Below the pieces are notes generated by a model. That model saw only the letters and a program-made list of their open reading frames with translations. It did not search any database and had not been told where the DNA came from. 64,000 bases of DNA from Octopus bimaculoides (Eukaryota), in assembly GCF_001194135.2 (NCBI RefSeq), contig NC_068988.1, positions 80,642,970 to 80,706,969 of the forward strand, in the 5' to 3' direction. Every line of letters begins with the position of its first letter. The first letter of the stretch is position 1. The translations under genes were made by a program, and so were the position numbers. Below are positions 9,901-63,965 of the stretch, in pieces.

Positions 9901-12900
9901 NNNNNNNNNNNNNNNNNNNNNNNNNNNNNNNNNNNNNNNNNNNNNNNACTTGGCTTGCAGGGTCTTCTCACGCACAGCACATTTCCAAAGGTCTCGGTCA
10001 GTAGTCATCGCCTCGGTGAGGCCCAATGTACGAAGGTCTTGCCTCACCACCTCAGCCCAGGTCTTCCTGGGCCTACCTCTTCCACGGGTTCCCTCAACTG
10101 TTAGGGTGTGGCACTTTTTCACGCAGCTATCCTCATCCATTCTCACCACATGTCCATACCAGCGCAATCGTCTCTCTTGCACACCACAACTGATGCTTCT
10201 AATGTTCAGCTTTTCTCTCAAGATACTTACTCTGACGGGTATTCACATTGACATTAAATTTACCAGAAATATTAATATGTACCCAGATTAATCTAAGTAC
10301 TTCCAATAAGCCATTTAATAGAAATTTTTGTCAAGACAATATATCTAAAATTGAAAATTTTATCAAAATTAATGTCAGTCAGCTCAAAAGTGTTTAAAGC
10401 ACAAAAAACATTTGTAACAAACCAGATTGAATGAAACCATACCAAATTAGCACTAATACAATGGATAAGAAAATTTTTTTTAAAAAAGCTTTAAGCAAAA
10501 ATGAATGTAGCAGCAATAAAACAATTATATATATATATATATGCATGTATGTATGTGTGCGTGCATGTTCACACATACTAATAAAGAAAAGGACTATTCA
10601 CTACCAATTATAGAAAGAAAATAGGTCACTAATTAGATAATATAAGGATTAATTTGTCCTCAAAATAGTTACATACCTTTAATTCTTGTGATTTCTTTAA
10701 AATGTAACAATTACGAAAATAAAATAAAAAAAAGAAATTCAAATGAGATGAGGTTTTAGTTGCTATTTTTAAAGCAAAAAATCAGCCAAATTTAACATGT
10801 AAATAAATCATACCATTATTGAAGACAATGTTAGTTTTGTCAAACAAAATTCAGACATATTAGAATAAAACATTTCAAAACAACATGGGAATGCAAACAA
10901 AGCCATTGACAAGGTACCCCCCTGCACCTTTATCTGGAGGGCAATACAGAAGCCAGGGATAAATGAGCGGTTGGTGATAGTTGTACAAGCTATATACGGG
11001 GATGTTGTCAGTAAGGTGAAAGTTAGCAATGATTATAGCAATGAATTTGGTCTACAGGTAGTTCACAAAGGATTAGCTCTCTGCCCCCTCTCGTTCATCA
11101 GTCCTCAAGGCCATAATAGAGGAATTTAAGACTGGCAGCCCTAGGGAGCTCCTCTATGCTGATGACTGTTCTTATAGCTGATTCACAACCAGAACAAGGT
11201 CTGGAAGCAAAAGGCTTTACAGTTAATTTAAGAAAGGCCAAAGTCCTCGTAAGTAGGAAAACAGGCAAACCACAAATCCCTTCAGGGAGATGGCCCTGCT
11301 CGATATGTAGAAAAAGTGTAGGTAGAAACTCCATAAGGTTAACCCAGTGCAAGCTATGAACATGTAAGAGGTGCAGCAATATCACAGGAAGGTTAACAGA
11401 GAACGTAGCCATTGTATGTGGCAGATACACAGGTACAATAAACACTGAGAATGTTCAGAAAATAGACCGTCAAATGCTCTGGGGGGTTACTTAGAAGTAA
11501 TAAATAGCTTCTGTTACCTCGGTGGATGTTCTGAGAGCATAGCTGATAGAATAGGGACAGGCTGGGCAAAATTCAGAGTTTCTACCTTTGCTGATGAAAG
11601 GCTTCTCCCTCAGAGTGAAAGGCAGATTGTATGATGCCTGTGATGAACAGCCATGCTACATGGCAGTGAAACATGGGCTGTGACTGCAGAGAACAAGCAA
11701 AGGCTTGAAAGAAATGAAACCACCATGCTCTGCTGGATGTGTTATGCCAGTGTACATGTGCAACAGAGTGAAAGAATTTTAAGAAAAAGATTGGGTATAA
11801 GAAGCATCAGATGTAATGTGCATGAGAGAAGATTGTGCTGGTATGGCCATGTGATGCATATGGATGAGAACAGCTGCGTAAAGAAGTACCAATCTCTAAT
11901 TGTGGAGGGAACCTTTGGAAGGGCTAGACAACATGGGACAAGGTGGTGAAATATGATCTTTGGTTGAGCCTCACAGTGGCAATAACAAGTGATCGAGACT
12001 TCTGGTAATTTGCTCTGCCTGATAAGACACGTCAAGCTAAGTGAATCATAGTCACTGTCATTGCTGGTAATACATGAAAAACACCCAGAGCCCTCTGTGA
12101 AGTGGTTGACATTAGGAAGGGTATCCAGCTGTAGAGACCAAGCCAAACAGACAACTGGAGCCTGGTGTAGCTCTCTGGCTTACCAGTTCCAGTAAAACCA
12201 TCTAACCCATAACTGCATGGAAAATGGATGTATGATGATGATGATGAATTGGGTGAGATTAAAACATTTACAAAAACATTCCATAAAAATTAATTCAAAA
12301 CTGCCTTAATTCCTTCCACTAACTCTAGTAATAAATTGTATCCAAATAATATGTATCTAAACTAGCAGAATCAGTTTTCCTGCCATTATTTGAAGACACT
12401 GTAAAAAGTCAATCAAACTAAAACATGAACAACAAGATATTTTTTCATCAAAATTCTAACAGTTTTCCATTAAAAATACTAATTAATCCCTTACTAATTT
12501 CATAATCTCTAAATCTTTAAACTTCAAAACTGAGTTATAAAATGAGTGTTACCATCATACAACTAGTGTCATTCATTTCCAGTAGTCTGCCAAAAATACC
12601 TAGGAAATATTATCTTGCTTGGAAACAGTTGAAGGTTGATGACAGGAAAGGCATCCAGCCAAAGAAAATCAGCTTCAATAAACTCCATCTAAGCCATGGA
12701 AAAGTGGTTGTTAAAATGCTGATGGTTATGATGGAAATATTTCTCCAGTATTTTTAAAGAAAGATTTTTTTAATTAAACAAAAAAATCTTTAGCGATGAT
12801 ACAATTCTTGATCTGTTTCATTTTTTTTCAAATAAAATGTTCATCAACAACTAAACTGTCTTTTAATTGAACTAATAACAATTTTAAACCAGTTTTCTGA

Positions 12901-13947: not shown

Positions 13948-16900
13948 ACACACTATATATATTTTATGCATTGTTTTATAAACTTAATACACAGCACTCA
14001 TAAAATAAATACTCAATGTTCCATTTTCCCCATAAGCAAAAAAAAAAAAATATTCCGTACTTATGATGCAACCTTTAGTTAAATTGCATATATCTGCCAC
14101 ATAAATAAGCATGAATATTTCATGGAATTGCACTCATGTGCATGCATTAAGTGATAGGTGATATAAATAACTTAGTTCAATTAAAAAATACACTTTTCAA
14201 TATCCAATCACCACCACCACCTCCACCACCATCATCTCACTCCTTCCTCTCTGCCTTTCTTTAACCTCACCATCAGAACTCCACCCCTCTGCTACAATTA
14301 TATTTTTAGCTCTCCTCTACCTTCAACTAACTTCTTTAACCACATAATAAATGTCTCCCCTACCTCACATCATGGATGTTTCTCTCCCTCTTTTTCTGTC
14401 ACACTCTTCACATTATCCTCTTTTTCTCCTTTCTTTCCCTTCATCTAATCATGTGAAAGCATTACAATTACATTCCCTCTATCTTGCATCAAGGACACTT
14501 CTCTCCCTCGTTTTCTCTCCCCTTTTTTCTCTATTCAATGAAAGCATTACCAACAGGCTAAGTAACGCAATGGCAAGCAAAATTATCATAATACATTTCT
14601 GTTAACAGCAGCCAGACTGGACCAGTTTAAATGCATAAAACAGCTTGTTTTTTCCCTTCCCAAAATGTACCAAATAAGTTATTTCATCTACACCATTCAG
14701 TGTTTGATGAATAACTCATCATTTCATGCATAAAACAAATTCAAAAGTTATGCAGTATTGCATCATCATCATCGTCGTTTAACGTCCGCTTTCCATGCTA
14801 GCATGGGTTGAACGATTTGACTGAGGACTGGTGGACCAGGAGGCGACACCAGGCTCCAATCTGATTTGGCAGAGTTCCTACAGCTGGATGCCGTTCCTAA
14901 CGCCAACCACTCAGAGTGTAGTGAGTGCTTTTACATCCCACCAGCACGAAGGCCAGTCAGGTGGGTACTGGCGACGGCCACACTCGAAATGGTGTATTTT
15001 ACGTGTCACCTGCACAGGAGCCAGTCCATCGGCACTGGCAACGATCGCGCTCGGACGGTGCTCTTAGTGCTCCATTTTGAAAATTCATGCTTTCAAAACT
15101 GTCTTAATGTCTAAATTAAATTTATTGGAGACTTAAGTGTAAACCAATTATATCTAGTGAAGAAAATGAGAGAGAATTTCATAAAGAAATACATAAGCTA
15201 AATAAATTATTAATGTTGAAGAAATGTAACTTACTGCTTAAATGCTGGTAAGTAACTGTAAAATGCTTGAGAAACAACATTATAAACAAATGGCAGATGC
15301 TTCTTAATATCTTTTGTAGCCCAATCCTTAAAGAATAAATTCAATAATCCTTGGTCACCACCTACAGAGAAAGTTATAAAATATTAAATGGCATGAAAAG
15401 AAAGTATTTAATTTTAAGCAAAAATAAAATAAAATAACTCACTTCAGATTCCAAAACATTAACTGACAGAGGTTAAACTTTTACCAACTCATTTATTTCA
15501 AATGAGCATATGAAGTTACATATTTTCATACCAATCTTTTTACAATTTAGATTCTCTAAAAAGAAATAATGGGAAATGCAATTCTAGCAATGCTAATAAA
15601 TGCTTGCCTTGAAAATAGTTGAATTAAACAGTATTGATTCAACGTACTTGTGTAAAATGTATTGCAGACGTTTTTACTTTAGTGCAAACTATCATATGAG
15701 AATTTAGACTACTGCAATTTCAGTTTGAAAAGATTTAATAGGTTTTTCCCTAAAAACAAATATCCTAACTAAAATCAAGTTTTACTTCTAAATATCAAAA
15801 TAGAAAAGAAAAATAGACACTGATTTTGAGTTATGATATGACAGATACCAGTCTGAGGATGTCAACACACAGAGCCTGCAAATTATGTAAACTATTGCTT
15901 TCACCAAATCTATGGAAAAAGTTGAGCCTCACACTTATGTTGAAACCCATCACATCACTGCCTTTTCTACTGCTAACTACAGAAAACTTTTCAGTCCTGA
16001 CTGCTTTCACACAACCTCAACTCATCACTTTAATGTCCACTTTTCCATGCTTGCATTGGTCAGATGGAATTCCTTGAAGATTTTCTACAGCCAGATGCCC
16101 TCCCTGCTGCCAACTCAAATGTTTCTAAGTAAAGTAATTTTTCCCCATGGCCAGATGTTTTTCACTGATGATTGGAAACATCACTTGCACATTTACATCC
16201 ATCATTTGAAGTTAATAAAAAAAGTACTCATACACAAACACATATACACACAGTTTCCATTTACCAAATCCTTTCACAAGGCTTTGGTTAGCCTTACATC
16301 GGAAGACATTTGCCCTAGGTGTTATGCAGTGGGACTGAATCTGAAACCACATGGTTGGAAAACAAGCTTTTCAACCACATAAACATGATTGCACTGAGAC
16401 AAACACATACACACACACAGCTTCTACCAACCAGTTTCACCAGGTATTGAAGTGACAGTTATATTATAAAACATTAGCTAACAACATTCACACAGTAGGA
16501 CTGCAAAGCATTTTAGTCCTACACCTCATCTCGCTTATAGTGTCAACCTCCACCCAAACCACTTTTCCCAACCCTTCCTCTCTTAAGTCATTTCACAGGG
16601 ATTCCCTCCCTGCCTATGTTTTTCCTGCAGCTGCCAACTTACAACTGTTCAACAGAAAATTGAATCACATTAATATCACCAAATTCTGAGGGCCTACAAA
16701 AACTATGAGCACAGTCCCTTTGTCCAGACCAAACCAATGTAAAAATAAACCTCCATTAGATATAGTGCCCATAGCCAAGAGAAGTGAGCCCTTGTTAGTG
16801 ATATACCTTAGTAAAAAGATTTCCCCAAACAAGCATGAAACAATATTTCCAGCAGCTATTTAGATAAAATATATCAAATGCAACAGAGATAATCCTAGAG

Positions 16901-19900: not shown

Positions 19901-20141
19901 CAGAAAAAATATCACTATCATCACTGGGTTGAACACAATTCTTTGGGGCAGATTTTTTTTTATGGCTAGATGTCCATCCTGTCACTAACTTTCTCACCCG
20001 TTTTCATGCAAGACAATGAATATTCCCCATGAATAGACGTGTATTCACAGGAGACTGGAAATGAATGATGCTACTTGTAGGACAGTGATACTCATCATTT
20101 ACAACTATCATGATAAAGGGACGCTAACACACGTTCACCAC

Positions 20142-20175
<34 letters not shown>

Positions 20176-23100
20176 TGGGCTTTTAGTTTTCATGTATCAA
20201 ATCCACTCACAAGGCTGCAGTAGAAGACATTTGCCCAAGGTGCCATGCAGTGGGACGGAACTTATTGGGAAGCAAACTTCTTCACTAGACAGCTATACAA
20301 GCATCAAGGTATAATACAAATTGTATTTTCTTGAATATTGTGATGAATGGAAGAATTTAAATTTATCGTAATTACTGTATAAAATACATCAAAAAAGTTC
20401 ATCTATAGTAAACAAAGCAAAAACACACTTGAAAGTAACCTTTGAATACCACCAGTTTTGGTCATGGAAATTACATGTGTAAAATGTATGTGCATGTGAG
20501 TGTGCATGTACTCAATATTGTTTAATGAAAATTGTATTTTCTGAGTTGGGGGTCTAACAACACAACAATTGCAAAACTTGAAGAATCTGCATACAAAATT
20601 AAAAACCTGAATTGGAAACTGTTTCCACATACTGAACCCTTTAAATATGAAGCTATATAAACACAATAACGAATGTGTATGTTCACATTACAAAGAATGA
20701 TATCACACTAATAGATGTTTTAAGAAACTGTGCTGTTTTTAGTATATCTATCAAACAACCACTCATATTTTCTTTAAACAATACCCTACCGCCTTATGTA
20801 TTGTATGTTTGTATAAGCCAACAAGTGAAACTTCTACATGACAGCTGGACATGTGAATAGCAACCAATCCTCTAAATTGCAGGCATCCATGTATTTGCTG
20901 ACCAATGAGCAAAGCCTCTATCTACATAGTGGCTAAATATGTTAGAAATAGCAGCCAATTCTCTCTCATATCACACCATGTGTCTCATATTAGATTGATA
21001 AAGTAGTTGGGCCTTGCAAAATACCTGTCAGTTTTATTTAAAATGAAAGATTACCATTTTAAACTTTCTGATTTTTTAAACGTTTTTCACCATACTAATT
21101 TTTACTCTCTTCTATAAATATACAAATAAACAAGATGCAGGATTAGTGAGATGCTATTTTAAGCATATATTAATTCAGTTCTAGCCTGGCTAGCTATCAC
21201 ACAAATCAGTCAAACACTTTGGTTACCTATACTGAAAATCATTTTACGACTTACTGATGACTACCTCCAGACATCCTGAGCAAAGGAAACCAAATCAGGT
21301 TGAAATATCACTTTCCAATCTACCGGCATTCTCAGTAAATACCTATGTCTTTTTCTATACACGAGTCTTTGTAAAGTTTCTCTGAGACAGCTGTTCTATA
21401 TTAGTGCTGTTCCAGATTTGTATATTGAACGCTAAGTAGAATGGATTACATTTCGCTAAGTTCTTCTCCTTTCAACAGTCTTACTAGGCAATGGTATATC
21501 ATCAAAGCAGATTCTGCTCCTAAAGCTCTTTCTATAACCATCATAAAGTGGTCCATCAGTTTAATGCCACAATATCTGCCAATTTCTTTTCACCAGACAA
21601 ATTAAGTTAACAAAGAAAAAAAATGCCATACAAAATTTGCTAAACAACCAACCAACTATAAACATGCATGCAGGTCTCCACAATATCCTTATAATTGATT
21701 AGCAATTTTGAAATCAACATACTTTCATATGACTTTGCACTAAACCACTTAAATAACACTGATCTAGTTTTCTAAAAGTTTATTTTCTTCGATAGCTGCT
21801 ACCCATCAATACTTTTACTCATCTCCAAAGTATTAACTTTTGATTTTAATGTTGTAAGCAGTAAGATGCCACTACATTCCCTATGCAATAGTATTCCTGT
21901 TTCTACTTCTTTCCAAACGCTGTATTATGTCAGTTTCTGGGTACAATGAGCAACTTAAAAGCTTTCTTTTCACAGCTTTCCCAAACTGGTAGGAATATCC
22001 TTTACTGTTTGACCAATATATAACTAGGTGTGGTTGAGTGGTATGAAGTTTACTTCCAAACTGCATGATCTCAGGTTCAGCACCAAGGCATGACATCTTG
22101 GGCAAGTGCCAACTATAGCCCTAAGCCAACCAAAGTCTTGAGAGTGGATTTGGTACACAGAAACTGAAAGAAGCCCATTTGTGTGTGACTGTGTGCATGT
22201 TATTGTCTCCTTGGCTTGACTTCATGTAATAGTTGTAAACAAATGTCATTTTTATGCAAGCAGTGTTCTTCATTTCCAAATGTCAATGAAAATCTCTAGT
22301 CATGGAGTATATTACCTTACTTGGAAATTGAGGGTCGGCGACAGGAAGGAGATCCAACTACAGACAATCTGCCTCAACAAATTCCATCCAATCCATGCAA
22401 GCATCAAAAAGTGGACATTGAACAATGAAGATAAAAGTAAAATACTTAAACACTGACAATTGGTTTTTTTTTCAACTTGAATGTATAAACAGTTATGGAG
22501 TCATATCAATAACCAGTGACAGGATTAAAGAAAATAAAATTGGTGAATGATGAAAAGGGTATCAGATAATTGGATCTGAGACTATTGGACACGAGATTAA
22601 TGTACATTTATCATATGCACACACATACTATACATCACTTGTATATATTTATATACATGCTTTTTTTTCTCCATGTTGGAATGGGCTGGACAAAGACATT
22701 GAGGCAGTATTCTACAACTGGATGCCTTTCTGTCACCAACTTCAGTTTTTATTTCTGAAATAAGGTATTTAATTCTACTGGTCTTCATACAAACCTGCTG
22801 AATCACAGAACACATTGTATACAAGAAATACATGCACCATTGCTTAAAAAGGAGTCAATGTGGATATAAGGGAACAAATACTTGCACATGAACCACACAC
22901 ACACATTTCATATACATACATACATTACAAACATCTCAGTGTAAGTGATTTGAGAGGCAAACTGGGTATACAAGGCATCAGATGTAGTGTAAAAGAGAGA
23001 AGACTGCACTGGTACGGTCATGTAATGTGTATGAATGAAGACAGTTGCATCAAGAAGTGTCGAGCTCTAATTGTGGATGGAACATGTGGAAGGGGTAGAC

Positions 23101-26100: not shown

Positions 26101-29100
26101 TAAAGTTTTGCTTTTTTTTTTTGTTTTTAAAGTTTTACATTTCTTTATATTGGACCTAGAAACATTTACAATCTTTACAGTAACTGAACTTTTAAATACC
26201 ACTAAAGATCATTAAGTATACATGTCTACATTAGGTACAAGATGTACATGTATACATAATATAACCAAAACCATAGCTGTAGATATATGGCTTTATGGTT
26301 AAAAAGTTAATTTTGCAACCACCTGGTTTCAGGTTCAGTTCATTGGGCAGCTGTCTACTACAGCCCTAGGTCAACTGAAACCATACAAGTGAATATGGTA
26401 GAGAGAGACTGAAAGAAGCCTATTGTGTGTGTGTCTCAGTGTTTGTTAACATTAGTGATCTACAAAAGTCACTTGCTACAAATGGTGTACTACTGTCAAC
26501 AAATCAACTGCACATTTTGGACCTTTGAAGACTTGTGTTCAATAAGAAGTCTCTTACATGAAAAGCAGGCATGGATTAATGATAGGAAGGGCATCCAGCT
26601 GTAAAACAATGCCTGAATAATATGTATAACCCATGCAAACATGGGAAAACAAGACATAAATGATAACTGTCATTTGAAATCAAGTATGACATGATAACAT
26701 GTATCATGCTTTCACTAATTGTTTTAGGTGCTTATATAGTCACAAACAGACATCCTTTCAGTCATTTTACGTTTAACCCAGCAGAACAACAAAGATGTGA
26801 CAGCAGAGAGAAGAGAGGGTGGCATTAAAACTCAGCTGATACTCATTTAAGTTTAGTGTACTGAAGCAATAAGTGCTTTGCCCAAGGACACATGTCTCCC
26901 AGTTCAGGAATCAGACCCATAACCTTATGATTGAGAGTCTAAGAGCCTAATCATCAGACCAGACACCACCACTGAACATAAATGGTATATATTTGTATGC
27001 ATGTCACTTCTGCTCAAGCAAATATACATACCAAATATGTACACACATGTATACATGCTATACACATATGAATAATATACTTATGTACCAGCATAGATGT
27101 GTGGTTACAAAGTTCACCTCACAATAGGTCATCAGGTCCCATCACACACTGTGGTAACTTAGACAAATGTCTTCTACTATAGCCCTGAGTTGATTTGGTA
27201 GATGGAAACACTACAGAAGCCCGTCATATATCTTGTAAAACACTTAAAATATCTATACACACAAGTGTGTATGTCCCCACATCTTTACAGTCACACTGTT
27301 TGAGTAGTAACATTTAATTTTGTCTCCCATAGCTCAGCAATATTGTCTGTTTCAATACGAGAAAACCAACGGAATAATGAGGGTGGGCTGAAAAGTTCAT
27401 AGGCTGGCTATGCAGGATTAATGACAGAGCTGTGAAATTTTGCATCCATTAATTTTAACTCCTCTTATTAATGACTGCACCGTTTCTTTCCAGCTAAACT
27501 GAACTCTGACTGTTCAAAGAAGACTTTAAAAGTAACAAGTAGCAACTACTCTTGAAAATCGACAAAATTTGGCACTGTGGGGTCACAAAGTACCTGCAGA
27601 AAAAGGCTTTAGCCCCCAAGGACATTCATGTTAACATGCTACATTAGAGGAGGACACTATAGCTTTATCAGCAGTGTAAACGTGAGCAGCTGATTTTTGG
27701 AAGGAAAAGGGGGAGTCTTGAAGATCAGCCAAGGTCTGGACCTCTGCAACCACTGAAGAAAACATTAACTGTGGTCACCACTTGGTGATGCATGACAAGT
27801 GATTGACTGTAAATCAAACAGCCAGTGCTATTAACATATGAGAGTTGGGAATATTCTGCACAATGAAATTGTCATAAGGAAGGTTTCTGCTTGGTGGATG
27901 CCACATCTTCTGATGCACATTTGAAAGTGCACCAGGCTGATCACATCATGGGAAAGTCTGACATTGTTTCAGGCAGATCCAGCTGGTTTCTTTGAATGAT
28001 TTCTAACCCAAAATGAGTGTTGGGTTCATCACTTTGAGCTAGAGACAAAGGGACATCCATGCAGTGGAAACAACCCACCTCACCTGCTCAAAAGAAAGCC
28101 AAGTTTGCTTCATTTGCAGGGTGTGTGATGGCCTTAGTATTTTGGAGATGCAAAAGGCATTGTGTTTATCGACTTCAAAAGGGTCACACCATCAATAGAG
28201 TGTACTATGCCAAATTGCTGAGGCAGTTCCAGAAAGCTATCAAGACCCAAGAAAACTGACAAAAAGAGTCTTGTTTCATCAGGACGATACTCCAGCACAC
28301 AAGTCCTTGGTTTCAATGGCTGCTGTGTATGACTGTGGCTTTGAACTGGTTGATCACTCTCCCTATTCTCCTGATTTCGCTCCATCTGACTATCATCTGT
28401 TCAACATGAAAAAACACTTAGCTGGGAACCAGTATTGCATTAATGATGATATCGTATCTATTGTTAACAGGATGAGAGCCAACAGGATGAGGCCAACAGG
28501 ATGAGAGCTTCTTCACCAATGAGATCCAAGCACTGCAACACTAATGGAATAAGTATGTGGAGTGCAAGGGGTACAATGTTGTAAAATAAACCTCATTTGG
28601 TCACATTCCATGAGTATTATGGTCACCCTATGAACTTTTCAGCCAACCTCATAAACTACCTTAATTAAAGATAAAACAACATGAAGGGCAGCAGGCCCTA
28701 CAATACTGCCTCAGTAAGTCTCATCCAACCCTTGCTAGCATAGAAAAAGTTGACGTAAAAACTACCATACTGATACAGACATACACATAATATGCACAAT
28801 AGACATGACTATATAAAAAGAAAAAATACATATATACATTTGTGAGTGCATCCTGCAAGTGTTTATGGTTTAAAACCTACTCTAGTTTATTCTAAGTCCT
28901 TTAATATCCCAAAATTTAACACTATGACAATAAGTATCAAACAGGAGTCAATACAATTGAGAAGGCCATTGAAGATAATGCCCTAGCATAATTACAATCA
29001 ACTAAATCAAACCAATTAGAAGAACAATAATACAGAAACAATATGCACAAAAATATGCACAGAATATTCTTATACAAGCTGCTGTAGCAATGAAAAAAAA

Positions 29101-41100: not shown

Positions 41101-44100
41101 GTGAAACGTGACTGTTCTTTTGATGAACGGGGCTTCACTGACCTTTTTCCGAATAACTGGAAACTTGAAATGAATGCTTATATTTAGTTTTAGAGTGTGT
41201 ATGAATACATATATACGAATAGATAGATGTGTATGTATATATACATATATATTTATGTATAGTATATCGCATGTATATATTTGTTTGTATGTATAGAGAG
41301 ACGGAAAGTTTGGTACAAGAGATATGTTTTGTCTATTTTTAGCTCTTGGAGAAATCTGTAGGAACAGCCTAACTTCATATTGTGTGTGTGTGTGTGTGTG
41401 TGCATGTATGTATATATATAAATATACTTACATCAGGTACACGCTTGCGCACGCACACAATCACACACATACGCACATTACACTTGCGTGCACTAGCGCC
41501 CGTAGTTAACCTATTGAACAGAATCGAAATTATCTTGTTTGCTAAAAATTGCTATTTCTTCAGATTTGTATGTTTTAAATATCGGGGATTACGACTCTGC
41601 AAAATTAAAAAATTCTTCGAATTTTGAATTTTTTCTAATTTTCACTCTCATCGCCTCTCCGAAATTTTTCAGGATCTTTTTCTGCAAAAAAAAAAAAGAA
41701 AAACCGAAGTTCCAAATTTTTCTTTTGCCAATTTTGCTCCATTACCCTCCTTTCTGTAACTTTTTCAGTTTTGACTATTTCTCAATTTTTTTAATCATCG
41801 AAAATTACAGTTATGCAGAAATAGAATTTTCACATTCAATTTACAGTTTCATCTGGATTTTTTACATACGTGGAATGTAGGCAAAAAATTCAAATTTTGA
41901 AACAATCTTGAGGGTGAGGGGCAGTATCGTAGTCTCTAATGNNNNNNNNNNNNNNNNNNNNNNNNNNNNNNNNNNNNNNNNNNNNNNNNNNNNNNNNNNN
42001 NNNNNNNNNNNNNNNNNNNNNNNNNNNNNNNNNNNNNNNNNNNNNNNNNNNNNNNNNNNNNNNNNNNNNNNNNNNNNNNNNNNNNNNNNNNNNNNNNNNN
42101 NNNNNNNNNNNNNNNNNNNNNNNNNNNNNNNNNNNNNNNNNNNNNNNNNNNNNNNNNNNNNNNNNNNNNNNNNNNNNNNNNNNNNNNNNNNNNNNNNNNN
42201 NNNNNNNNNNNNNNNNNNNNNNACAAAAAATGTAGAAAATTACAGTAGAATAGACATATTATAATTGTGGTAACATTTAAAATCCAAGTGGGAAGAAGAA
42301 TACATAAAAATCCATCTTGACATAGCCAAGGCTAGCAGGCTAGTAATTAGTTCTAGGTAGAATTCTAACTGTCTCTGATTTTATTGTCTCTTATCTAGTG
42401 GTTATAGTATAAGGGGCAATCACTTCTAAGGAAAGGGAAGGTGTAAGCATTATACATGGATATGGTTATAAAGGTTTCTCTGGTCAGAGTGGCAACACTA
42501 TTTTAGGTTGGGGTTTTTTTACTGCTATCATAATGTTGGGGAATTAAACCTTAAGCATTTAGGTCAACAGGGCTTTTTCTTTAGTCTGAATGAAGCATCA
42601 GTATTGTTTTACATATACTAAGTATGGGAAATTTATATATATACAGTGGGACTGTACCCGGAACCATGTGGTTGGTAAGCAAGCTACTTACCACACAGCC
42701 ACTCCTGCGCCTATATATGTGTGTGTGTGTGTGTGTATTGTGGCCATCCATACATACAGGTGTGTCCTTTATGGCCATAACCTCACTCCTTCTCCCAGCT
42801 GATAGGTCTTTGTTTTGCAAGTACCAGTGCCACATAATATGCACTTCTACTGGTGCCACATTAAATCCGTTCATGCCAGTGTCACATAAAAGTGTCAGTA
42901 ACATGGTTGGCATTAGGAAAGTCTCCAGCCATAGAAACCATGCCAAAACAATTGGAGTTAAACAATCCAATCCATGCCAACATGGGGAAACAGACGCTAA
43001 ATGCTGCTGCTGCTGCTGATGATGATGATGAATTATCATCATCTTTAAACATTCATCTTCATCTTCCATGTTGGTGTGGGTTAAATGATTTGGCAGGATC
43101 TGACAGGTCAGAACTGCATCATGCTCCAGTGCCTGCTTTGACATAGTTCCTATGGTTAGATGCCTTTCCTAACGCCAATCATTTTACAGTTTGTACTGGG
43201 TGCTTTCCTTCTGGCACTAGCACTAGCAAGGGCGTTATGCTGCTTGTAAGACTAAGGTACCTTTCAACTGAGTAAGGCTGCAGTTGAGAGGAAAGCATCC
43301 TTATGCCAGGAAGTGAGAGGGTAAAGTATGGAAGAAGGGGCCAGAACAGAATAGGTTTCTTGCTATGGAAAAATTACATAACTGCTCACATTATAGAAGA
43401 GTTGGTGTGAGTAACCAGGGTGGAACTAGAAAGAGAAATAAAATAGAGATGCAGTGTCAAAGTAGACCTTCAAGCTAACTAAAAGTGATTGAGAATCAGA
43501 ACAAAAAGTGAGTAGGGTTGCAAAAGTATGTGAAGAAAGTGAGAGAGGGTTAGAGATGGGGAATGAGTGAAGGGGCAGATATAAAGAACAATGACAGAAG
43601 GATGGTTGATGATAGATAGAGAGAGAAAAGTAGGTGATGACTAGTGATTGAGTAATGAATGGTAGACAAGGGTGGAGGACTGATCAATGATGCATATGAA
43701 TTGGGGGAAGGCAATAATTGATGACTGTCAGTACAGAAGTGTGTGAAGAGCAGCAGAATAGTAATGATAATACAGTAGACTGGCGAAGATGAGAGAGTGG
43801 GAAATGATGTGTGGGTGGGCAAGCTGTATGGGGGGGGGGTTAAGGGAGAGGAAGATGTAATATGTGAGGAGAGTGAGCTGTGTGGAAGTTGAGAAGGAGA
43901 ATAGTAGTACAGAAGTATGATCAGTGTAAAATATGAGTGGAGAAGGATAATATTAAGAATTAAAGATGGGTGACAAGTGAAGTAGTGCCAAGAAGTGAGA
44001 AAAAATAACTGGTGTCACAGTTATGAGCATAATTGAGAGGTCTGAAAGAGAGATGGGTGGTAAAGGCTTGAGGAAGAAACTGAACAAGGAGCAAGTTGTG

Positions 44101-44777
44101 TGTGTATATTTGTGTGGCTTAGTGTCTATTCTCCTTGTCTTCACATGTGTATGCTGATTATGAGCAAAGGTCATCAATCATTCAAAATGGTGTCATTTGT
44201 TTTTAATCCTGTGTGAAAGTATGTCTAGAGTGATCACTAGCTAGCCATCATGTTCTCATACCTCTGTTGTTGTTACCATGGTAAAATGCACTTTGTAAAA
44301 TGATTGGTAATAGGAAGGATAGCCAGCCATAAAAATCAAGCCAAAGAATGAAATGTGGACCACAACTTATCTATGAAAGCACCAACGACCTGTCTAACCC
44401 ATGCCAATATAACAATCAAACATGAAACACCACAACTGTCAATGATAAATGTTCACAGTAGCATTAAAGATAATTCTAAAGCTATGGTATTCCTAAAAGC
44501 AAATGTCCCAACATTTAAGAAAATGTGTTTCCACTGGAGATTATGGGAGGATCTGACATTTAGAAAATTACAAAACACTAATTAGATTTAAGATTGCAGA
44601 AGAAATAGTGAAATTTTAAAATTACCAAAATTATCAACTGCCATTTGTGAAAACCTGGATGACAGGTAGAAGTGAAAGAAATTTATTTAATGCTCGTTTT
44701 GAAGTGTTAGCAAGTATAAAACATGAAAAAATGAATATAATTTTTGGTCTTGTGACCAGAAATTTGTAGTGGGTTGT

Positions 44778-50000: not shown

Positions 50001-50512
50001 CTCTTTTATGATATTTCCATCATTGTTCAATCACTGGTAGTGCTAATTGGTGGCTCACCATAAACAAAATATGGGGTGACAGATTAATCTAAGAATAGAG
50101 CTTTGCTATGAAATTTTGCTGGGTACAGACATGTTGGTGTGGTTCAGAAGTTCATTTTGCAAATATGTGATTTTGAGTTTTACCCCATTACATGGCACCT
50201 TGGGCAAGTGCCTTCTGTCATAGCCCCAGGGTTGTCAAAACCTTGTAAGTGAAATTTGGTGGATGGAAATTGTATGGGAGTCTGTTAGAGAGACTGTTCC
50301 TGTTGTTGGGGTTATTATTCATCATCACGATTTTAGCACTCATACATGCATCAGTATTTATCAAAGTGTATTTTTTAGGGATGGATGCCCTTCTTGTTGT
50401 CAACCCTTGCCTGTTTCCAAGCAAGGTAATATTTCCCTATGGCCAGATATGTTTACACAGAATATTAGAAATGAATGACACTGTTTGTATGATAGTGATA
50501 TTTGTAGTGAAC

Positions 50513-50677
50513 ATTGGCGGTCAAGCAGGAAAGCAAAACGAAAAAGGGATTTAACAAGAGTAAACCTTCTAGAAACTTCTCAAACATTCTAGAAGCTTCC
50601 GGTTGATGTGAAAGTCAGGGACCTCTGGTTCATCACTTATATAAAGGAACACATTTCTAAATTCGCGCCACTCATTG
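50513..50677 (+). promoter_or_regulatory. Heat-shock-type Pol II promoter: inverted CCAAT (50513-50517), HSE array (50561-50600), TATATAAA (50638-50645), initiator-like CCACTCATT (50668-50676)
   Basis: tAAAc-cTTCt-aGAAa-cTTCt-cAAAc-aTTCt-aGAAg-cTTCc: 8 alternating pentamers in register, 6 perfect. TATA-to-initiator distance is 30-34 nt. Confidence 0.85.
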
Positions 50678-50934
50678 CCTGTTGGTTTTTCTTTCACAAC
50701 GTAAGCTGCTTGGAATATTGCTATTGTTGATACTAATTGTTTTATGTGTATTGTGGTTTCCCATTGTTTATTATTCCATTGGAAATAATTTTGTCTTAAT
50801 TTGTATCCTTCCTCTTGGGGGAGGGTAGAAAAATTAATATTTTGTTTAAAAATTTTTTTTGAACTGCATTCCCTTGTGAAACTTATTTCTTGTATGTAAT
50901 TTTTTGCACTTGCTTGTACAATTTTGTTTACAAA

Positions 50935-52535
50935 ATGGCTGAACAACAACCAAAGAAGTTAAACTTTGCTGCCGTTGTTGGCGGACCAGTGAAAATTGAA
51001 TTGTGTAAGGAAGAAATACAACAGTATTTCAGCATGATAACCGAAAAAGACGGAGACAACGCTATAATGCCTCTAAATGAGATGATTATAAAGACGAAAG
51101 AAACAAACTATTATATACAAATCATTCAACAATGAGAAAAAAAGTTCGAACATCTAGAGGAATCAACTATCGAAAAATGCCTCGGGCCAGTGTTAAAGGA
51201 GATTAAATACATGGCAAGAAGTTGCAGGTTCACTAAAATTGAAGCACGGTTCGAGTCGGTTGAGAAGGCCAGGGACTTCTCGACTCGAACCGTGCAAAGC
51301 AGGAATATTCTGCTTCTGTCCTTGTATTTGGGCAGAAGAACCTCCTGGATCAAAATTAAAAATATACCGCCAAAGGTAGAGGCAGTGTGGATAGCAGCTA
51401 CCATTCTCTTCAGCTGGGAGGAGAAGATAAACATCATCCAGATCACCAGAGATGCCCTGCAAAACTGGCGGGGTCAAACTCTGGAGATCCTGGCTCAGGC
51501 TTCTTTTGAGGACTTAGAAAACCTCCCTGAGACCATTCACATCTGGGAAGAGACGGTCTTGACAGTCAATGTGGAGGGAAGAAGACCACATTGCTTTAAA
51601 TGTAGTAAGTAGGGACATGTAAGACAGAAATGCCTGCAAAATAAGGATAAAGAAGAGGAGAACAAAGATGAAGTGGCACCCTCAGCCAAGGAGGCTGTTA
51701 CCCAGAGGGCAACTGCCTCCACCAATGTAAAAGAAACGCCAGCACCTCCAGCCAAGGAGGCTGTTACACAGAGGGTGTCGGCAAGCACCAAAAATTTAGA
51801 ACCAGCGCCCACAGCCAAAGAGGTTATTACTCAAAAGATGTCAGTGACTACCAATGCATCCCCCACCTGCCAAGAAGGCAGTTACAAGAGTGGAGGCCAA
51901 GGCCATCAACAAAGAGGTGGAGACGCCCCACCCACCAAGGATGTGGTTACACAGAGGGTAAAAATATAGAGGAGGAGATGCCCCCGCTAAGGAGGTGGTT
52001 ACACAGAGAGCGCCTACCTCCTCTAAAACAAATGCAGTGGCACCCCCAGCCATGGAGGCTGCTAAGAGGGCGTCCGCTGTGGACAAACTAACCATGACAC
52101 TGTCGGAAGAGGAAATGGAATTCCAGGTGGTGTCACGCAAATGTACAAAAAAAAATGGAGTCGCCACAAAAAAGTGATTAGAAAGATTGAGAAATCACAA
52201 TAATCCCCAACGAAGGACAAAATGGGTTTGAGATGGGTACAATTATCAAATAAGGAAGAAATTGTGGTAGCAGCATATAAAAAACACGATAAATACCTGG
52301 ATAGAGTTATTAAGCTGCACCATATAACACAATTAATAATAATGTAAATATAGTAAAGATGCTGAGAGAACTCTTTTTAGAGTTAAAAGAGAGACAAAGG
52401 AAAGACATTGTGGGAGTGAGGGATCTTCTTAAAATATTCAACCTGCCGATGGAACCATTTTTAGATGAGAAGGAAGAGGAGGAGGGGATGATCCTAGTGG
52501 TACTAAGGACTACCCAACTAGAAAAAACCAAATGA
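50935..52535 (+). pseudogene. LINE ORF1 (disrupted): RRM-like region, CCHC zinc knuckle, Pro/Ala/Thr repeat linker
   Basis: Starts MAEQQPKKLNFAAVVGG. Contains IKIKNIPP and CFKCSK*GHVRQKC (CX2CX4HX4C). In-frame stops at 51133 and 51610, frameshifts after about 51860. 3' end approximate. Confidence 0.8.
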
Positions 52536-52581
52536 GCAAGGTAAGCTCTGAATTTTTCTTCCTTTTTCACCTTAATATGAC

Positions 52582-55569
52582 ATGGCTGCACTACGTATTG
52601 GCTCTTTGAATGTGCGTGGCTTGGGATCGAAGAGGAAGCAGACCTGTTTCCTCGACGACCTCAGGACACACAGAATAGATGTGATGGTTGCTACAGAAAC
52701 CAAGTTGGACAAGCTACAGGCTTTCTCACCTCTCCTGAACAGCTATGAGAAAATCATGTCTCCTAGCCGAACCAGAGGGGGAGGAGGGGTCATATTTCTG
52801 ATCCAGAAAATCTTGGCTCTACAGATTCGTACAATCTTTGTGGACCCAGAAGGCGAGTCAGTCGTTCTGGCTCTAACTTTCAGAGGTAGGGCCTTCAGGT
52901 TGGTTGGCATTTACGTGCCTAATGCAACAGGCAAACAGAATGAGTTCTACCAACATCTGGAGAATTTCCTAGTGACATCGAAGACTTTATCTGTGTAAGG
53001 TGACTTTAATGCTATTCTTGATGCACGCATGGATAGCGTTGGCTCAAACAATAGGAAATGTGACTCACACCCCGTTGATCTGCTGAAGTGATTTAGGCTG
53101 GCAGATCAATTCAGACTTGATAATCTGAATGTGCCAATGTGGACGTGGACAAATCATGATGGATCAATCAGGTCTTATATACATAGGATCTTAGTTAATG
53201 CTGAAGATAAGTCTAGTGTTAGTTGTCCACAGTTTACCTATGTACCCTACACAGATCACAAATTAGTGATGTGTAGGGTGCATATAGACAAGGATCTGGC
53301 TACTGGAAGTTGAACAAGTCCCTATTGGATTGTGAAGCTTACCCTTGCCAGATTAAAGTGTTAGTTATGAGAACACTAACTGGCTCGCTCGGATGAAACC
53401 CATCATGGCGTGGATGCTACGATTAGGTCTGTGGTTAATGAACAAGGACAGAAGATCGAAGGACAGGAAGAGATGAGCAAGGCCTTTCATGAGCATTTTG
53501 CTGCGTTGTTCGGGAGGGGTGGGACGTTGGACCATGGAGATACCATATGAGATTTCCTGGCCGGTGGCCCACATCTTTTGGTGTGTGACAATGAGCACTG
53601 TGAAGGGCCGATCACAGCCAAGAAGGTTATAGAGGTGCTTTCCAAGTGCCCCGGGGACAAGTTGCTGGGATTGGATGGTCTACCTTACGAATTTTATAAG
53701 TGTATGCCAGACTTGTTCGGAAACATGCTGGCCAGTGTTTATGTAAATTGACAGCTCCACCCATTTCACTCCCAAATCTGTGAACCAAGGAGTTGTGACA
53801 CGCATCAGGAAAGACCTGAGCAAGAGGGATAACGTAAGTAATTTTAGGCCCATAACTCTGCTAAACACAAAGTTAAAGATTTTGGCCAAGGTATTAGCCA
53901 AGAGAATGAGAATTGTTGAAGGTGACCTGGTGGGAGAAGCGCAGACATGTGCCATCCCAGGAAGGACAATATTCGACAACCTTCATCTCATACGCTACAC
54001 CATAGAGTGGGTGGGTAAAGTTCCTGACAAAGGTGGGGCACTGGTGAATTTAGACCAATCTAAGGCATCAGTATCTGGAGGCAGTCCTCGAGGCGGTCGG
54101 ATTGGGCCCGACTTTCCAAGGCTGGATCAAAGCTTTGTATTGTAACATCAAATCTGTTGTCCGGGTGAATGGGTTCTTCTTGAACGCTCGGTTTGCCAGG
54201 ACTGCCCCTTGTCCCTGCACCTGCATATGCTGGCTCTCGAGCCACTACTGCGGAGACTGGGGACGTTGGGGGGGTAGAACCGTGTGATCTATCTTATGGT
54301 AGAAGTGTAACGGCATATACGGATGATGTTACCATCATTGTGTCTGATGAAGGACAGCTAACTCTTGTAGAAGACGCCATCAAAGGATATGAAGCGGTGG
54401 CAGGGGCAGAAATTAACCAGGAAAAATCAGTCGGCTTGCAACTCAGCACCTGGCATGACATGTCGATGCCTCTTGATAGCATCATCAGATGTTGGATGGA
54501 GGGCCTGGTTAAGCTGCTCAGGGTCTGGTTTGCATCAGATTACACAGGTGTTTATTGCATCTGTGATAACCTACCACCTAACCATCGTGCCTTGCCCCAG
54601 TTTATGACTGAACAAGCTGGAAAGGATCCTTTTCCGCTTTTTGTGGAAGGGGGAACCACCATTTGTGAGGTGCTCCATTTGTTGTCAGAAACCATTAAAG
54701 GGTGGACTAGGGATGCCTTGGCTGATGATGCGCAAATGTGTGTTGAGGCTGAGACATCTCCAGTGCTACCTGAATGGTGAGCAGGTGTGGTCACCGCATG
54801 CCAAGCAACTTTTTCCACATGGACCAGGCAGACTTAGGCACAAGGATCAGGCAGAAGCCTAAGATGGGGGAATAGCAGAGGGAGTGCAGACAAGCACTCA
54901 ATCTGTTCTCCCGAGTGAGTAGTGCCGGCAGTGAGGTTACCACTGTGGACTTTTATAGAGGGTTGGTAGAGTGTAAGTTTGACAACGTCCTGGAGAAAAC
55001 TCTGGGCTTTGACAACAAACAACTAACCAGCCTGTTTGCAAGGACATTCAGGTAGAGGTACCTGGATAATTAACAGAAATCCTTGGCTTGGTTGTGCTAT
55101 CGTTTGGCTTTACCAGTTCGGGAGAGGTTGTCCAGACACAGTTATAACGCCTCCCCCCACATGTCCGAGGTGCAGGCACATCAGTGAAACTGTTGCGCAC
55201 ACCTTTGTACATTGCGGAGAGTTGAGGGGGTTGGTGACCTATGTCGAACAACTGATGTTGGATGGGGAAAGAGTACAGCTTTCAACTGAATTCATAGTTA
55301 AGATCGCACCACCTCCCTCCTTTAACAAGGAAAGGAAGGCATCCTTTTTCTGCGTAGTAGCCATACTGAAAGAGACAGTGTGGTGAATAAGAGCAAACGG
55401 GATTGAGACAGGTCACTTCATCTCCGGACAGGGGTTGGAAAGTTGGTTCAACTTCCACCTCATGAGGAAGATCTGTCTGGAGAGAAAGTACCTGCCTCAT
55501 AGTGTGTATGAGAAAAGATGGAAAAATGTAGTAAGACAGTTGCATATGCATGGGGCCATGCTTGTGTAG
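52582..55569 (+). pseudogene. LINE ORF2 (disrupted): APE endonuclease, reverse transcriptase, C-terminal Cys/His finger
   Basis: EN: GSLNVRGL, ETK, GDFN, TDHKLV. RT: NFRPITLLN, GRTIFDN, LDQSKA, YTDDV (54316-54330). C-terminal CPRC...ETVAHTFVHC. Many stops and frameshifts. Confidence 0.92.
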
Positions 55570-56211
55570 CCGGTCAATGAAGAAAAAGGAGGAAAACAAT
55601 CTCTCTCGACCAAATATTAAAGAAAAGAATGAAGTTTCGAAACTGGCAGGTTGGAATAGAGCCTGGAGGGAAAGTTATATAAAATTCAATAGTTTTAATT
55701 ATACATTAATTAAAATTTTTAAACCATAACGTTTTTATCATCCTGATCCTCATATTGTAATCACAACAGTATGGTCCCCTCTCCCCTGTAAGACTGTCCA
55801 TTGTTTGTCCCTGACCCCTCGTTGTTATATCTATATATGCCATTATAGGTAAATAAAGAAATCATTCATTGCCTGTTGATTCTTCGACATGCATACGTTC
55901 ACCTCACTTACTTGGAGACGTAATTGCAAAAAAGAATATGTTCATGTAATGTTACAAGATTTCCTTCAATTAACTTTATATGTTAATGCATTACCTCCAA
56001 TAATAAATATGTTATGACTTATTACGAACATCTCGCGAATTCCTGTTTTCTTATTACGTACAAGATGGTGACCCCCTCTTTCTTTCATGCTTATTATATT
56101 ATAGGATGTCATTTAATCGACCCATTTTCACTATATACTCATTTACAACTTTCACATTGTCAAGACATGGGGACACAAACATGCACATATTTACACACAC
56201 ATACTCACATG

Positions 56212-56243
<32 letters not shown>

Positions 56244-58653
56244 TGCATGTATGTGATGGGCTTCTATCAGTTTTCTTCCACTAAACCCACTCACAAGGCT
56301 TTGGTTAATCCACATCTAGAGTAGATGACACTTGCCTTGCAAAGGTTACAGGTGCTGTCCTTCTCCAATTGAATAATTACAAAAGGGATAATAGCATAGG
56401 AAAAATATGTAATAAAGCATAATTTATTTGGGAACATTGTGTTTCATTGAATAATATTACATTCTATTGTTTCTAACTAAATACTATTAACACTGAGACT
56501 GCTAATTAATGGCCAAAATATTAAAGTATCTCAAACGCAAAATTTAGCCGATAAATAAATAGATTTCAACTTAGATCGCCCACTCTGTTTTCTGGAGGGC
56601 GGCCGAATGTGTCATTATTGAAGCTAAACAAGATAACGTATCTGATTTGAAAAGAGTCTACTAATGTATTTAGGTACTCACTCCACCTGTTAGAAATGAC
56701 AACCAATCATACATTATCCTTCTAACTAATGAAAGGTCACACCAGACGTAGTCCTACATACGCCTGAAAAGACACTTGCGCTGATAAGAGACGCTTCATG
56801 ATTGTTTTAGCGAATTTCAATTGCAATTGTTCCACAGAAATGACGTCAGCATTATGGCTTACTTCAAGAATTAAAACAAAGAAAGAAAAAAAAATATTAG
56901 GTTAATTTGTTCGGACGAAAAGAAAATCTCACAGAACAAAGGTCTTTATTTTATGGCGTGAACCCATTTTTGGAAATGAATCGCAATGGCTTAGATAAAT
57001 ATTTCCAATTGTAACTGTTTTGTCAACATTTTGCCCAAGAACATCGGACATGGAAATATGAAATTCACAACCTATTGAGATCGAGTCATAAAGGAAATCT
57101 GAAGTACTCTATATTAAAATAAGTATTTTAAACCAATGAAAACGGGTGTTTAGTTGGCTATTTCGTTGGTCAGAGACATTCCAGGATTCACGATCAAGTA
57201 AAATTATAACCTATAAAGTATTCTGTAGTTCAGAATAGTTAATCATTTTCTACTTCCGGTTTTCTATTTTATGTCCTCGAACTTTGATAGATAACCATTG
57301 GAGGTCATTTTAGATAGATGTAAACAATATATAACTACCTGATATAGACAGTAAGTACTTATGTATTTTTCTGGAATTTATGAAATATCTGATACTTTAA
57401 CAACAGCGTAATTTTCCTCTGAGAGGTTTCCATCTTTTTTGGCAGTTTACCGTCCTTGACATGGTTACCTTGACAACGAGTAATGTTCGAAACGATACAC
57501 CTCTCCATCACTTCAACTCTCATGTGCTTCTTTCAGTGGATTCTATTTTATATAATTATCTTTTTGTTATTGTATTTATTTCTATATAGGTAACTTTGTT
57601 TTGTTTAATTCTATTAACATATACAAATAGTAGGTTTATGTTAGTGGAAAATAAAATCAAAAGCGTGAAGGAAACGATAATGTATGAAGAAATCGCTATA
57701 ATTCACGTTATACACATATGTATGTTTTATAACGTCTAATGTACATATACACACACACATGTATACATATGTGTGCGTGTTTGAATGTGGGAACATGGTG
57801 AGAATAAAGTTGATACTCCTACATGACTTCGGAATGTTGTCTCTGATACATTTAATTATTTTATATTCTGCTCTATTTCTTACTGCGTGTTTGTTCTCTC
57901 CACAGGAATCTGTCCTGCTCTTTCTTTCTTCCTTCATTTCTTTTTTCCTTTTTGTCTTCGATAGGTGACACTTGTTGATGTCTTGTAAAATTTGATTTTA
58001 AACAAATCTTAACATTACGTGACATATATATACACACACACACATTACGTGATATATATATGTGTGTGTGTGTGTGCGTGTATACACACACACACATAAA
58101 AGGTACAAAACAGAATATAGTGTTAGATTACTTATTTCATATGTATTCTTTTGTCAGAATATATCATGTAGTTATACATTAGCGTATAGCCTCATTTTTA
58201 GTGTGGTGAAATTTGGACTGTTTCATACATCTCCGCATCTTTTTGTAAGTGGGGGACGAAACGATAGAGTGCACTTTCTCTCAAATGTTACCCTCACATT
58301 CCGGCGCTCATCACCAAAATAAAATCATTTATGTGTGTTACAATTTACACATGATATAGATCCAAAAGGCTCATTTAACTTGAAACACTAACATTCGGTA
58401 GAGATAAAAGGAAAAGTCGACCGCATTGAAACGTGATTGAATTTAAAACTCTTGGGATATAGATTTAAATACTACCAGACTTTGATCGGCTTTCTGTTTC
58501 AGATTTTAAAATATATTAATAACAAATGTATTTTTGGTAATTCTCTAAATGATTTCAGTGACGGCTCTGAAATATCACAAGAAAATATCACAAGAAAACT
58601 TCAATAAATAACTTCTTGCTTCATTGTTGTATTTTGAATATAACAGGGTTTTA

Positions 58654-62962: not shown

Positions 62963-63965
62963 CTTAAAAACAAGGAGAAATAAGTTATACAATTAAACAA
63001 TACATGTAATTAAGAGCCAAATTGAAGAAGCCTCTTTGCCAGTGGTGCAAAAGCTTTATAGTTAGCATCAGTGGGGTGAATTACAGGTACTTAGGAACAT
63101 TTGGGGATCACATCAGTGGTATGTAGACAATAATAAATCTTAAATTTTACAGATTCATTAGTAATTAAAATTCAATTATTGTTTGCTTTAAACAGATTTT
63201 TCCGTATGGACTTTTCAAAGATCTTGTCAGTAGGCAATTTCAGATTTGAATCATCATCAGCATCAGCATCATCATTATCATCAATGTCATTGTTATAATG
63301 TCCACCTTTCCATGCTGGCATGAGTTGAATGGGATTTATTGAGACAGATTTCCTATGATTGAATGCCCCTTTATCGCAAACCCTCATCTGTTTCCAAAAA
63401 TATTCCCCATGACTGGACATGTTTCTGTAGAAGATTGCAAACAAAGGAAACCATCTATATGACAGTGACACTTGTTTACAACTCTCATGCATTTCAACAA
63501 CAGGAGACACCAACTCACACATAGACACATGAATGTATATATATATATTCATGGGTTTGTTTGTTTCTTTTTTATGAAATCCACTCACAAGGCTTTGGTC
63601 AAGCTAGGGATATAATAGAAAATACTTCCTTAAGGGGCTATACAATGAGGTTGAACCCAGAACCAACTGGTTGGAAAGCAAGATTTTTAACCACATAGCC
63701 ATGCCTGAATGCAAGTGAAATTTTGCCTGTGAGTAAAATGATTCCCCGTCTCCCTGTTAACAATGAGTTTATTACATACAGTACTCAGGTGCACTACATG
63801 GTCACTTGATCTGCTACAAATAACTTCCAAATCTTCTTCAAATCACCATCTTTTTTTAAAAAAAGAGGACATATTACGTAATGAAGTTTAAGATAAAACT
63901 GTGTCTGAAAAGATGTGGATGGCTATTGTTAGAATATCATTTATGTGTGTATGTATGTATATATG

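Follow-up and report, generated by a model that had tools for sequence, protein, structure and literature searches.

A LINE of the L1/Tx1 type at the predicted start site of a heat-shock-type promoter in a nested transposon locus of Octopus bimaculoides

Can a retrotransposon come under a stress-type promoter by landing inside another mobile element and, if so, does it land there by rule or by accident? The question is raised by one locus of Octopus bimaculoides, analysed here within a window of 64,000 nucleotides (assembly GCF_001194135.2, contig NC_068988.1, positions 80,642,970 to 80,706,969 of the forward strand; the coordinates below count from the first letter of the window). The region 50358-56254 is a three-layer nest, in which a short interspersed nuclear element (SINE)-like repeat holds a small DNA-transposon shell and the shell in turn holds a long interspersed nuclear element (LINE). 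We tentatively favour, at slightly less than even confidence, a single nested insertion, striking in its geometry and with no family-wide rule behind it, possibly favoured by the site.

Position of the LINE relative to the promoter

The geometry of the locus depends on the following features:

50505-50684 (+): promoter-bearing left arm of the shell, ending where the LINE is inserted; from the sequence
50561-50600 (+): array of heat-shock elements (HSEs), tAAAc cTTCt aGAAa cTTCt cAAAc aTTCt aGAAg cTTCc
50638-50645 (+): TATA box, TATATAAA, 38 nt downstream of the HSE array; from the sequence
50670-50684 (+): first copy of the LINE target-site duplication, ACTCATTGCCTGTTG; from repeat search and alignment
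50685-55863 (+): full-length L1/Tx1-type LINE; from Pfam domains, a PDB match, relatives and a common 3' tail
55864-55878 (+): second copy of the LINE target-site duplication, ATTCATTGCCTGTTG, with similarity reaching 55885
55879-56133 (+): right arm of the shell, AT-rich, with AATAAA at 56002-56007; from the sequence and six-frame translation

The HSE array is made of eight contiguous, in-phase pentamers, six of them perfect and the other two with AAA instead of GAA. Tandem Repeats Finder resolves it as 1.9 copies of a 20-bp tandem unit (period 20), and TTCnnGAAnnTTC, present in two units 20 bp apart in the array, has only one other match in the 64 kb. The paired-HSE pattern was recovered in none of 100 dinucleotide-preserving shuffles, even when two mismatches were allowed. 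The arrangement expected of a promoter bound by heat-shock factor, an unbroken run of three or more inverted nGAAn pentamers followed downstream by a core promoter, is found here. The position and spacing of the TATA box lead to a predicted start near A50670, the predicted +1, which lies 32 nt after the first T of the box. From these motifs and their spacing, the left arm is predicted to be a complete heat-shock-type RNA polymerase II promoter, and we infer that it is working and heat-responsive. The sole CCAAT of the shell is inverted (ATTGG, 50513-50517), lies within the left terminal inverted repeat and may belong to that repeat rather than to the promoter. A first-pass annotation of the locus had credited the shell with CCAAT, eight HSE pentamers and TATA; the pentamers and the TATA box stand, and the CCAAT box is present only in inverted form inside the terminal repeat.

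The target-site duplication of the LINE begins precisely at A50670. Its two copies are identical at 14 of 15 positions, and at 20 of 23 when the comparison is extended over 50669-50691 and 55863-55885. The opposite end of the element is fixed independently of the duplication: the LINE ends at C55863, without poly(A), because its terminal sequence AATAAAGAAATC is shared with a relative from Argonauta hians, in which this tail directly precedes the duplication of that element. The flanking direct repeat is of the kind that integration by target-primed reverse transcription with target-site duplication would leave. It had been proposed at first pass that the duplication begins at the transcription start and that the promoter would yield a nearly unit-length LINE RNA. 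Both points agree with the geometry found, the predicted transcript consisting of a shell leader of 15-22 nt followed by the whole LINE.

Extent and class of the shell

The shell comprises 50505-50684 and 55879-56133, 435 bp in total, and the whole insert, read with an 8-bp duplication, covers 50505-56133. Its ends are defined by two short inverted repeats:

50505-50517 (+): left terminal inverted repeat of the shell, TAGTGAACATTGG, including ATTGG at 50513-50517
56121-56133 (-): right terminal inverted repeat of the shell, CCCATTTTCACTA

In the best alignment of these repeats, TAGTGAAcATtGG pairs with TAGTGAAaATgGG at 11 of 13 positions, in keeping with the earlier description of a shell of about 430 bp with imperfect terminal inverted repeats. 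When 81 combinations of offsets were scanned, the optimum was found at offsets (8,8), flush with both ends of the shell. Of 20000 segment pairs drawn at random from the window, 43 reached an inverted match of at least 11/13 (p ~0.002). Beyond the 13-nt terminal repeats, no significant subterminal inverted similarity was found in the shell.

The termini read TAGTG...CACTA on either strand. Terminal inverted repeats of the hAT type begin, as a rule, with YARNG, and the shell shows this start together with short inverted repeats flush with its ends. Given the proposed, decayed 8-bp duplication and the TAGTG termini, the shell is probably hAT-like rather than Tc1/mariner-like. Two other classes were considered and set aside. 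A TA duplication of the Tc1/mariner type would leave the inverted repeats 4 nt (left) and 2 nt (right) inside the ends of the element, and the four extra bases on the left (TTTG) would match the host repeat merely by coincidence. For a Helitron, 5'-TC...CTRR-3' termini and an A/T insertion lacking any duplication would be expected, and the shell has TAGTG...CACTA termini plus a flank duplication.

Six-frame translation of the right arm revealed no convincing coding capacity. The promoter at one end and the AATAAA at the other would fit an internally deleted DNA transposon that retained its own expression signals. An ATG-initiated open reading frame (ORF) of 42 codons is present in the right arm (55889-56017), and in the empty shell it would follow closely on the predicted start; the protein search with the shell frames gave no match to it, and it is probably meaningless.

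The host repeat and the insertion site of the shell

The outermost layer is an older SINE-like repeat of about 210 bp, with at least ten copies within the window as detected by an nhmmer profile and by blastn. It is interrupted at 50504/56142, and both flanks could be aligned with up to nine paralogs. Once the insert is taken out, the repeat runs continuously against these paralogs, and the empty site can be reconstructed. The features at this boundary are:

50358-50504 (+): left part of the SINE-like repeat; from nhmmer profile matches and paralog alignments
50497-50504 (no strand): first copy of the shell target-site duplication, GATATTTG, including TA at 50499-50500
56134-56141 (no strand): second copy of the shell target-site duplication, TATACTCA, including TA at 56136-56137
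56142-56254 (+): right part of the SINE-like repeat, with a CA-rich and (TATG)n tail

The left flank ends in GATATTTG, and the right flank opens with TATACTCA, followed by TTTACAAC. In the paralog alignment, both octamers occupy the same eight positions of the older repeat, which at the insertion point reads G-A-Y-A-Y-T-(TG or CA) before TTTACAAC. An 8-bp target-site duplication is proposed because both flanks carry these same eight host-repeat positions. The two copies are identical at 4/8 positions, and two of the four differences fall at an inferred CpG (TG vs CA). The dinucleotide at the insertion site is TG in five of eight aligned paralogs and CA in the other three, a split that is the pattern expected of a decayed CpG and would imply an ancestral methylated CpG. 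The duplication of the shell is, in our judgement and for a single decayed copy, better read as a decayed 8-bp duplication that includes the TA. Of the earlier claim that an older repeat is split with a TA duplication, the split is borne out by the paralog alignment; the TA is present, but on this reading as part of a decayed 8-bp duplication. An insertion without duplication, between TTTGT and TTTACAAC, was dropped once more paralogs had been aligned.

Copies of the SINE-like repeat are mutually about 70-75% identical. Examples within the window are:

2377-2526 (-): SINE-like repeat copy
12490-12681 (-): SINE-like repeat copy
16071-16263 (+): SINE-like repeat copy
19943-20175 (+): SINE-like repeat copy
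22156-22380 (-): SINE-like repeat copy
26417-26620 (-): SINE-like repeat copy
44091-44345 (-): SINE-like repeat copy
63336-63550 (+): SINE-like repeat copy

Classification of the LINE

The LINE is 5.2 kb long and consists of a 5' untranslated region (UTR) of about 250 nt, ORF1, ORF2 and a 3'UTR. The remnants of both frames lie on the plus strand:

50935-52200 (+): LINE ORF1 remnant, with start ATG at 50935
52582-55569 (+): LINE ORF2 remnant, with start ATG at 52582

ORF1 contains a CCHC knuckle of the form C-x2-C-x4-H-x4-C (CFKCSK*GHVRQKC, around 51590-51630). The motif was read directly and is the sole basis of the call, no family having been matched in a Pfam scan of the broken ORF1 fragments. 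ORF2 comprises, in order, an apurinic/apyrimidinic endonuclease (APE)-type region, a reverse transcriptase (motif YTDD) and, at the C terminus, a zinc-binding region, and Pfam scans of its fragments detected Exo_endo_phos (E 2.6e-5), RVT_1 (E 4.3e-5) and a weak zf-RVT. In a PDB search with the LINE, only chains of human L1 ORF2p match (E about 1e-26), and because of this the LINE is placed, by similarity, in the L1 superfamily. A CCHC-knuckle (type I) ORF1 in animal elements is consistent with the Tx1 clade (PMC5203782), and membership of the LINE in this clade is likely.

Both frames are decayed, ORF1 by two in-frame stops (51133 and 51610) and at least one frameshift, ORF2 by nine in-frame stops and seven frameshifts. 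The first-pass annotation had described a two-ORF L1/Tx1-type LINE in sense orientation whose copy is dead, in agreement with what was found here.

Relatives of the LINE and their flanks

Protein searches with ORF2 found the best relatives at 44-45% identity (Argonauta hians; GCA_024449705.1). With ORF1 there was one match, which lies on a 955-bp Logan contig without flanks and covers 45% of the query at 61% identity. No member of the LINE's own family was found in the protein collections, no match exceeding 45% identity in ORF2 or 61% in ORF1.

The nearest relative with readable flanks is the Argonauta hians element (locus L002), with 44% identity in ORF2 and 32% in ORF1. Its tail, ...GGCTAATAAAGAAATC, is that of the window LINE; a 17-bp duplication, TATTTTTAAAATTTGTA, follows directly and is found again at the 5' junction. 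This element has a 5'UTR similar in length to that of the window LINE and adjoins microsatellites, with neither an HSE nor a TATA box upstream. Two more distant relatives from the ENA (P0013 and P0007) form head-to-tail LINE arrays in a GC-rich organism and contain neither HSEs nor Rfam genes. Because the Argonauta and the distant ENA relatives lack upstream HSEs, they show, at the level of their flanks, that the lineage is not generally dependent on, nor generally sits behind, an HSE-promoter shell.

Single insertion, partnership or other histories

Neither blastn nor nhmmer found a second copy of the shell, the LINE or a UTR within the window, and the loci that were fetched contained no other copy of the shell. 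Ten ORFs of the window, looked up exactly in the protein collection, were not present there, and the six-frame ORFs of the empty shell, together with a minus-strand ORF across the 5' junction, matched no protein at E <= 1. Exact shell 22-24-mers gave 0 matches in the prokaryotic-genome and viral collections. When metagenomes were scanned for the paired HSE, at least 120 loci were returned, none like the shell outside the HSE itself.

Under the preferred reading of a single nested insertion, a non-autonomous, probably hAT-like DNA transposon of about 435 bp would first have entered the SINE-like repeat. A full-length Tx1-like LINE would later have integrated in sense by target-primed reverse transcription, its two nicks lying 15-22 nt apart, the upstream and first of them at the predicted +1. 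Before it decayed, the copy would have given rise, from the HSE promoter, to an almost unit-length RNA that began at the predicted +1 of the shell and carried a 15-22-nt shell leader. Several considerations weigh against a one-off event. The negative results of the copy searches speak for the collections and not for the source genome. Within the shell, a chance insertion in sense and within 5 nt of the +1 is expected in about 1.3% of cases (11/435 x 1/2). The figure is suggestive, but the locus was picked for looking meaningful, and one copy cannot separate endonuclease specificity from chance. Among Tx1-clade LINEs, specificity for a single site within a single DNA-transposon family is frequent (PMC4494074, PMC1950540), and because of this a specific association between LINE and shell is a serious alternative.

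In such a two-component partnership, which was put forward at first pass and is supported here in part, the LINE endonuclease would recognise the +1 of the shell promoter, the shell family would spread landing pads, and each filled shell would be a heat-inducible LINE source, a Tx1L/Tx1D-type composite with a stress promoter. We give this possibility real weight while holding it doubtful. In its favour, the LINE belongs to the L1 superfamily and has an APE endonuclease, and a full-length insertion in sense, nicked at the predicted +1 and flanked by a long duplication of 15-23 bp, fits as well; so do the CCHC knuckle of ORF1, consistent with the Tx1 clade (PMC5203782), the lack of poly(A) and the conserved 3' tail. 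Tx1 families are known to target piggyBac-type (Tx1D), Mariner-N4_AMi, Harbinger and LTR (long terminal repeat) elements, and transcription dependent on the target flank has been discussed for them (PMC4494074). However, there is one copy only, and it is dead; neither an empty shell nor a second filled one was found in the window or the collections searched, and the Argonauta relative with readable flanks is not inside such a shell. That a Tx1-type LINE family of an octopod-like cephalopod nicks specifically at the +1 of the heat-shock promoter of a hAT-like family of miniature inverted-repeat transposable elements (MITEs), with the MITEs as its landing pads and a heat-inducible LINE unit of full transcript length arising at each integration, seems to us rather unlikely.

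The filled shell might also have moved as a unit by means of a DNA transposase, as Xenopus Tx1 composites do, the LINE having inserted at another locus. The entire 5.6 kb is enclosed by the inverted repeats and the outer duplication, and one copy fits either order of events. On the other side, the outer duplication, at 4/8, has decayed further than the inner one, at 14/15, as would also be expected had the shell arrived before the LINE. We consider this history improbable. Still less credible, and in our view very improbable, is that the promoter block belongs to the LINE as its own 5' region, with the shell repeats and the duplication being coincidental. The block does lie directly upstream in sense orientation, and LINEs do carry internal or 5' promoters. 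Yet the body of the LINE is flanked, within the piece that carries the promoter, by the 14/15 direct repeat, the tail conserved in Argonauta ends the LINE 270 nt before the end of the insert, the two ends of the insert form inverted repeats directly adjoining the proposed 8-bp duplication (p about 0.002), and the Argonauta relative, with a 5'UTR about as long, has no HSE.

Comparison with known systems

Among the closest known parallels to the locus are the Tx1L/Tx1D and Tx2L/Tx2D pairs of Xenopus laevis, in which, as here, a two-ORF APE-type L1/Tx1 LINE sits in a small non-autonomous inverted-repeat transposon. Tx1 inserts into Tx1D by means of a sequence-specific endonuclease (PMC1950540), and the Tx1L/Tx1D composites and the window locus both have a long target duplication (PMC1950540, PMC4494074). 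The Xenopus composites are known from many copies, all at one site, whereas the window holds one copy. Moreover, Tx1D is of the piggyBac type, the window shell looks hAT-like, and no description of Tx1D places the target at the +1 of a heat-shock-type promoter.

In crocodilians, Tx1-Mar inserts into Mariner-N4_AMi and Tx1-9_AMi about 300 bp into a Harbinger element, and other families use LTR elements or microsatellites (PMC4494074). The likeness to the window lies in a preferred position within one DNA-transposon family (Kojima 2015, PMC4494074). The crocodilian preference, unlike the one copy of the window, is statistical over many copies, with no stress promoter reported in the target. The criterion applied by Kojima to target specificity is that more than 20% of flanks fall at the same target position (PMC4494074).

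As mobile elements that carry heat-shock elements, the HSE-bearing Helitrons of Caenorhabditis resemble the shell (Garrigues et al. 2019, PMC6927752). They differ from it in their Helitron termini, 5'-TC...CTRR-3', which are absent from the window shell. ONSEN of Arabidopsis is an LTR retrotransposon with HSEs in its own LTR, and like these Helitrons it can spread heat-responsive regulation. In the window, unlike in ONSEN, the HSEs are accompanied by a TATA box and lie in a small inverted-repeat element that hosts a separate LINE.

R2 (in 28S rDNA) and Keno (in U2 snRNA genes), target-specific LINEs transcribed together with their target, likewise lie in sense orientation downstream of the promoter of their target, and may need no promoter of their own (PMC4494074). 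Their targets are host multicopy RNA genes, whereas that of the window LINE is the RNA polymerase II promoter of another transposon. Walser, Chen and Feder reportedly described in 2006 that Drosophila Hsp promoters are insertion hot spots for P-elements, which was attributed to constitutively open chromatin. P-elements are DNA transposons that enter host genes, unlike the window LINE, and an open-chromatin bias of this kind is, to our knowledge, not established for LINEs using target-primed reverse transcription.

The components of the locus are thus of known kinds (a Tx1-like LINE, an inverted-repeat MITE and an HSE promoter), and composites of a LINE in a DNA transposon are established. If the arrangement recurs, its novelty would lie in the taxon and in the choice of target, a mobile heat-shock promoter entered at its start site. 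No paper joining heat-shock elements, transposable elements and cephalopods was found in the literature searched. A recurrent arrangement would provide a clear case of one transposon borrowing the inducible promoter of another via site-specific integration. In an animal lineage with repeats making up about two-thirds of the genome (PMC13282606), it would connect the mobilisation of LINEs with stress. L1-Tx1 families have been annotated as recently active in Octopus vulgaris (PMC13282606). The shell alone would be a candidate vehicle for the spread of heat-responsive regulation in cephalopods, parallel to the Caenorhabditis Helitrons (PMC6927752). If it is a one-off, the locus would be an ordinary nested-transposon site with a coincidental geometry.

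Minor features of the LINE and its relatives

Further observations concern the elements themselves. In the Argonauta locus L002, the 3'UTR contains an apparent internal duplication of about 120 nt (12020-12140 / 12420-12540; GGTGAAGATGAGA...GGATTTCTTAA), seen by eye only, and another fragment of this LINE lineage, in inverted orientation, occupies 529-1526. A distant relative with 33% ORF2 identity (L124/L125; ENA ERZ21867824, contig ctg88761c), from a cluster of 732 sequences, consists of complete ORF1+ORF2 LINEs in tandem head-to-tail order with a period of about 6.8 kb, with no Rfam gene between the units.

In the window LINE, the C-terminal part of ORF1 is built of six tandem units of about 63-66 nt (51676-52089), which encode repeats like APxAKEAVTQR. 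ORF1 also contains a perfect 15-nt inverted repeat at 51244-51295, GCACGGTTCGAGTCG ... CGACTCGAACCGTGC, with a 22-nt loop, predicted to fold as RNA at -35.2 kcal/mol. A counterpart in a 66%-identical relative (L001, ~268-300) keeps 9 of 11 pairs, and the hairpin may be a structured RNA element of the LINE.

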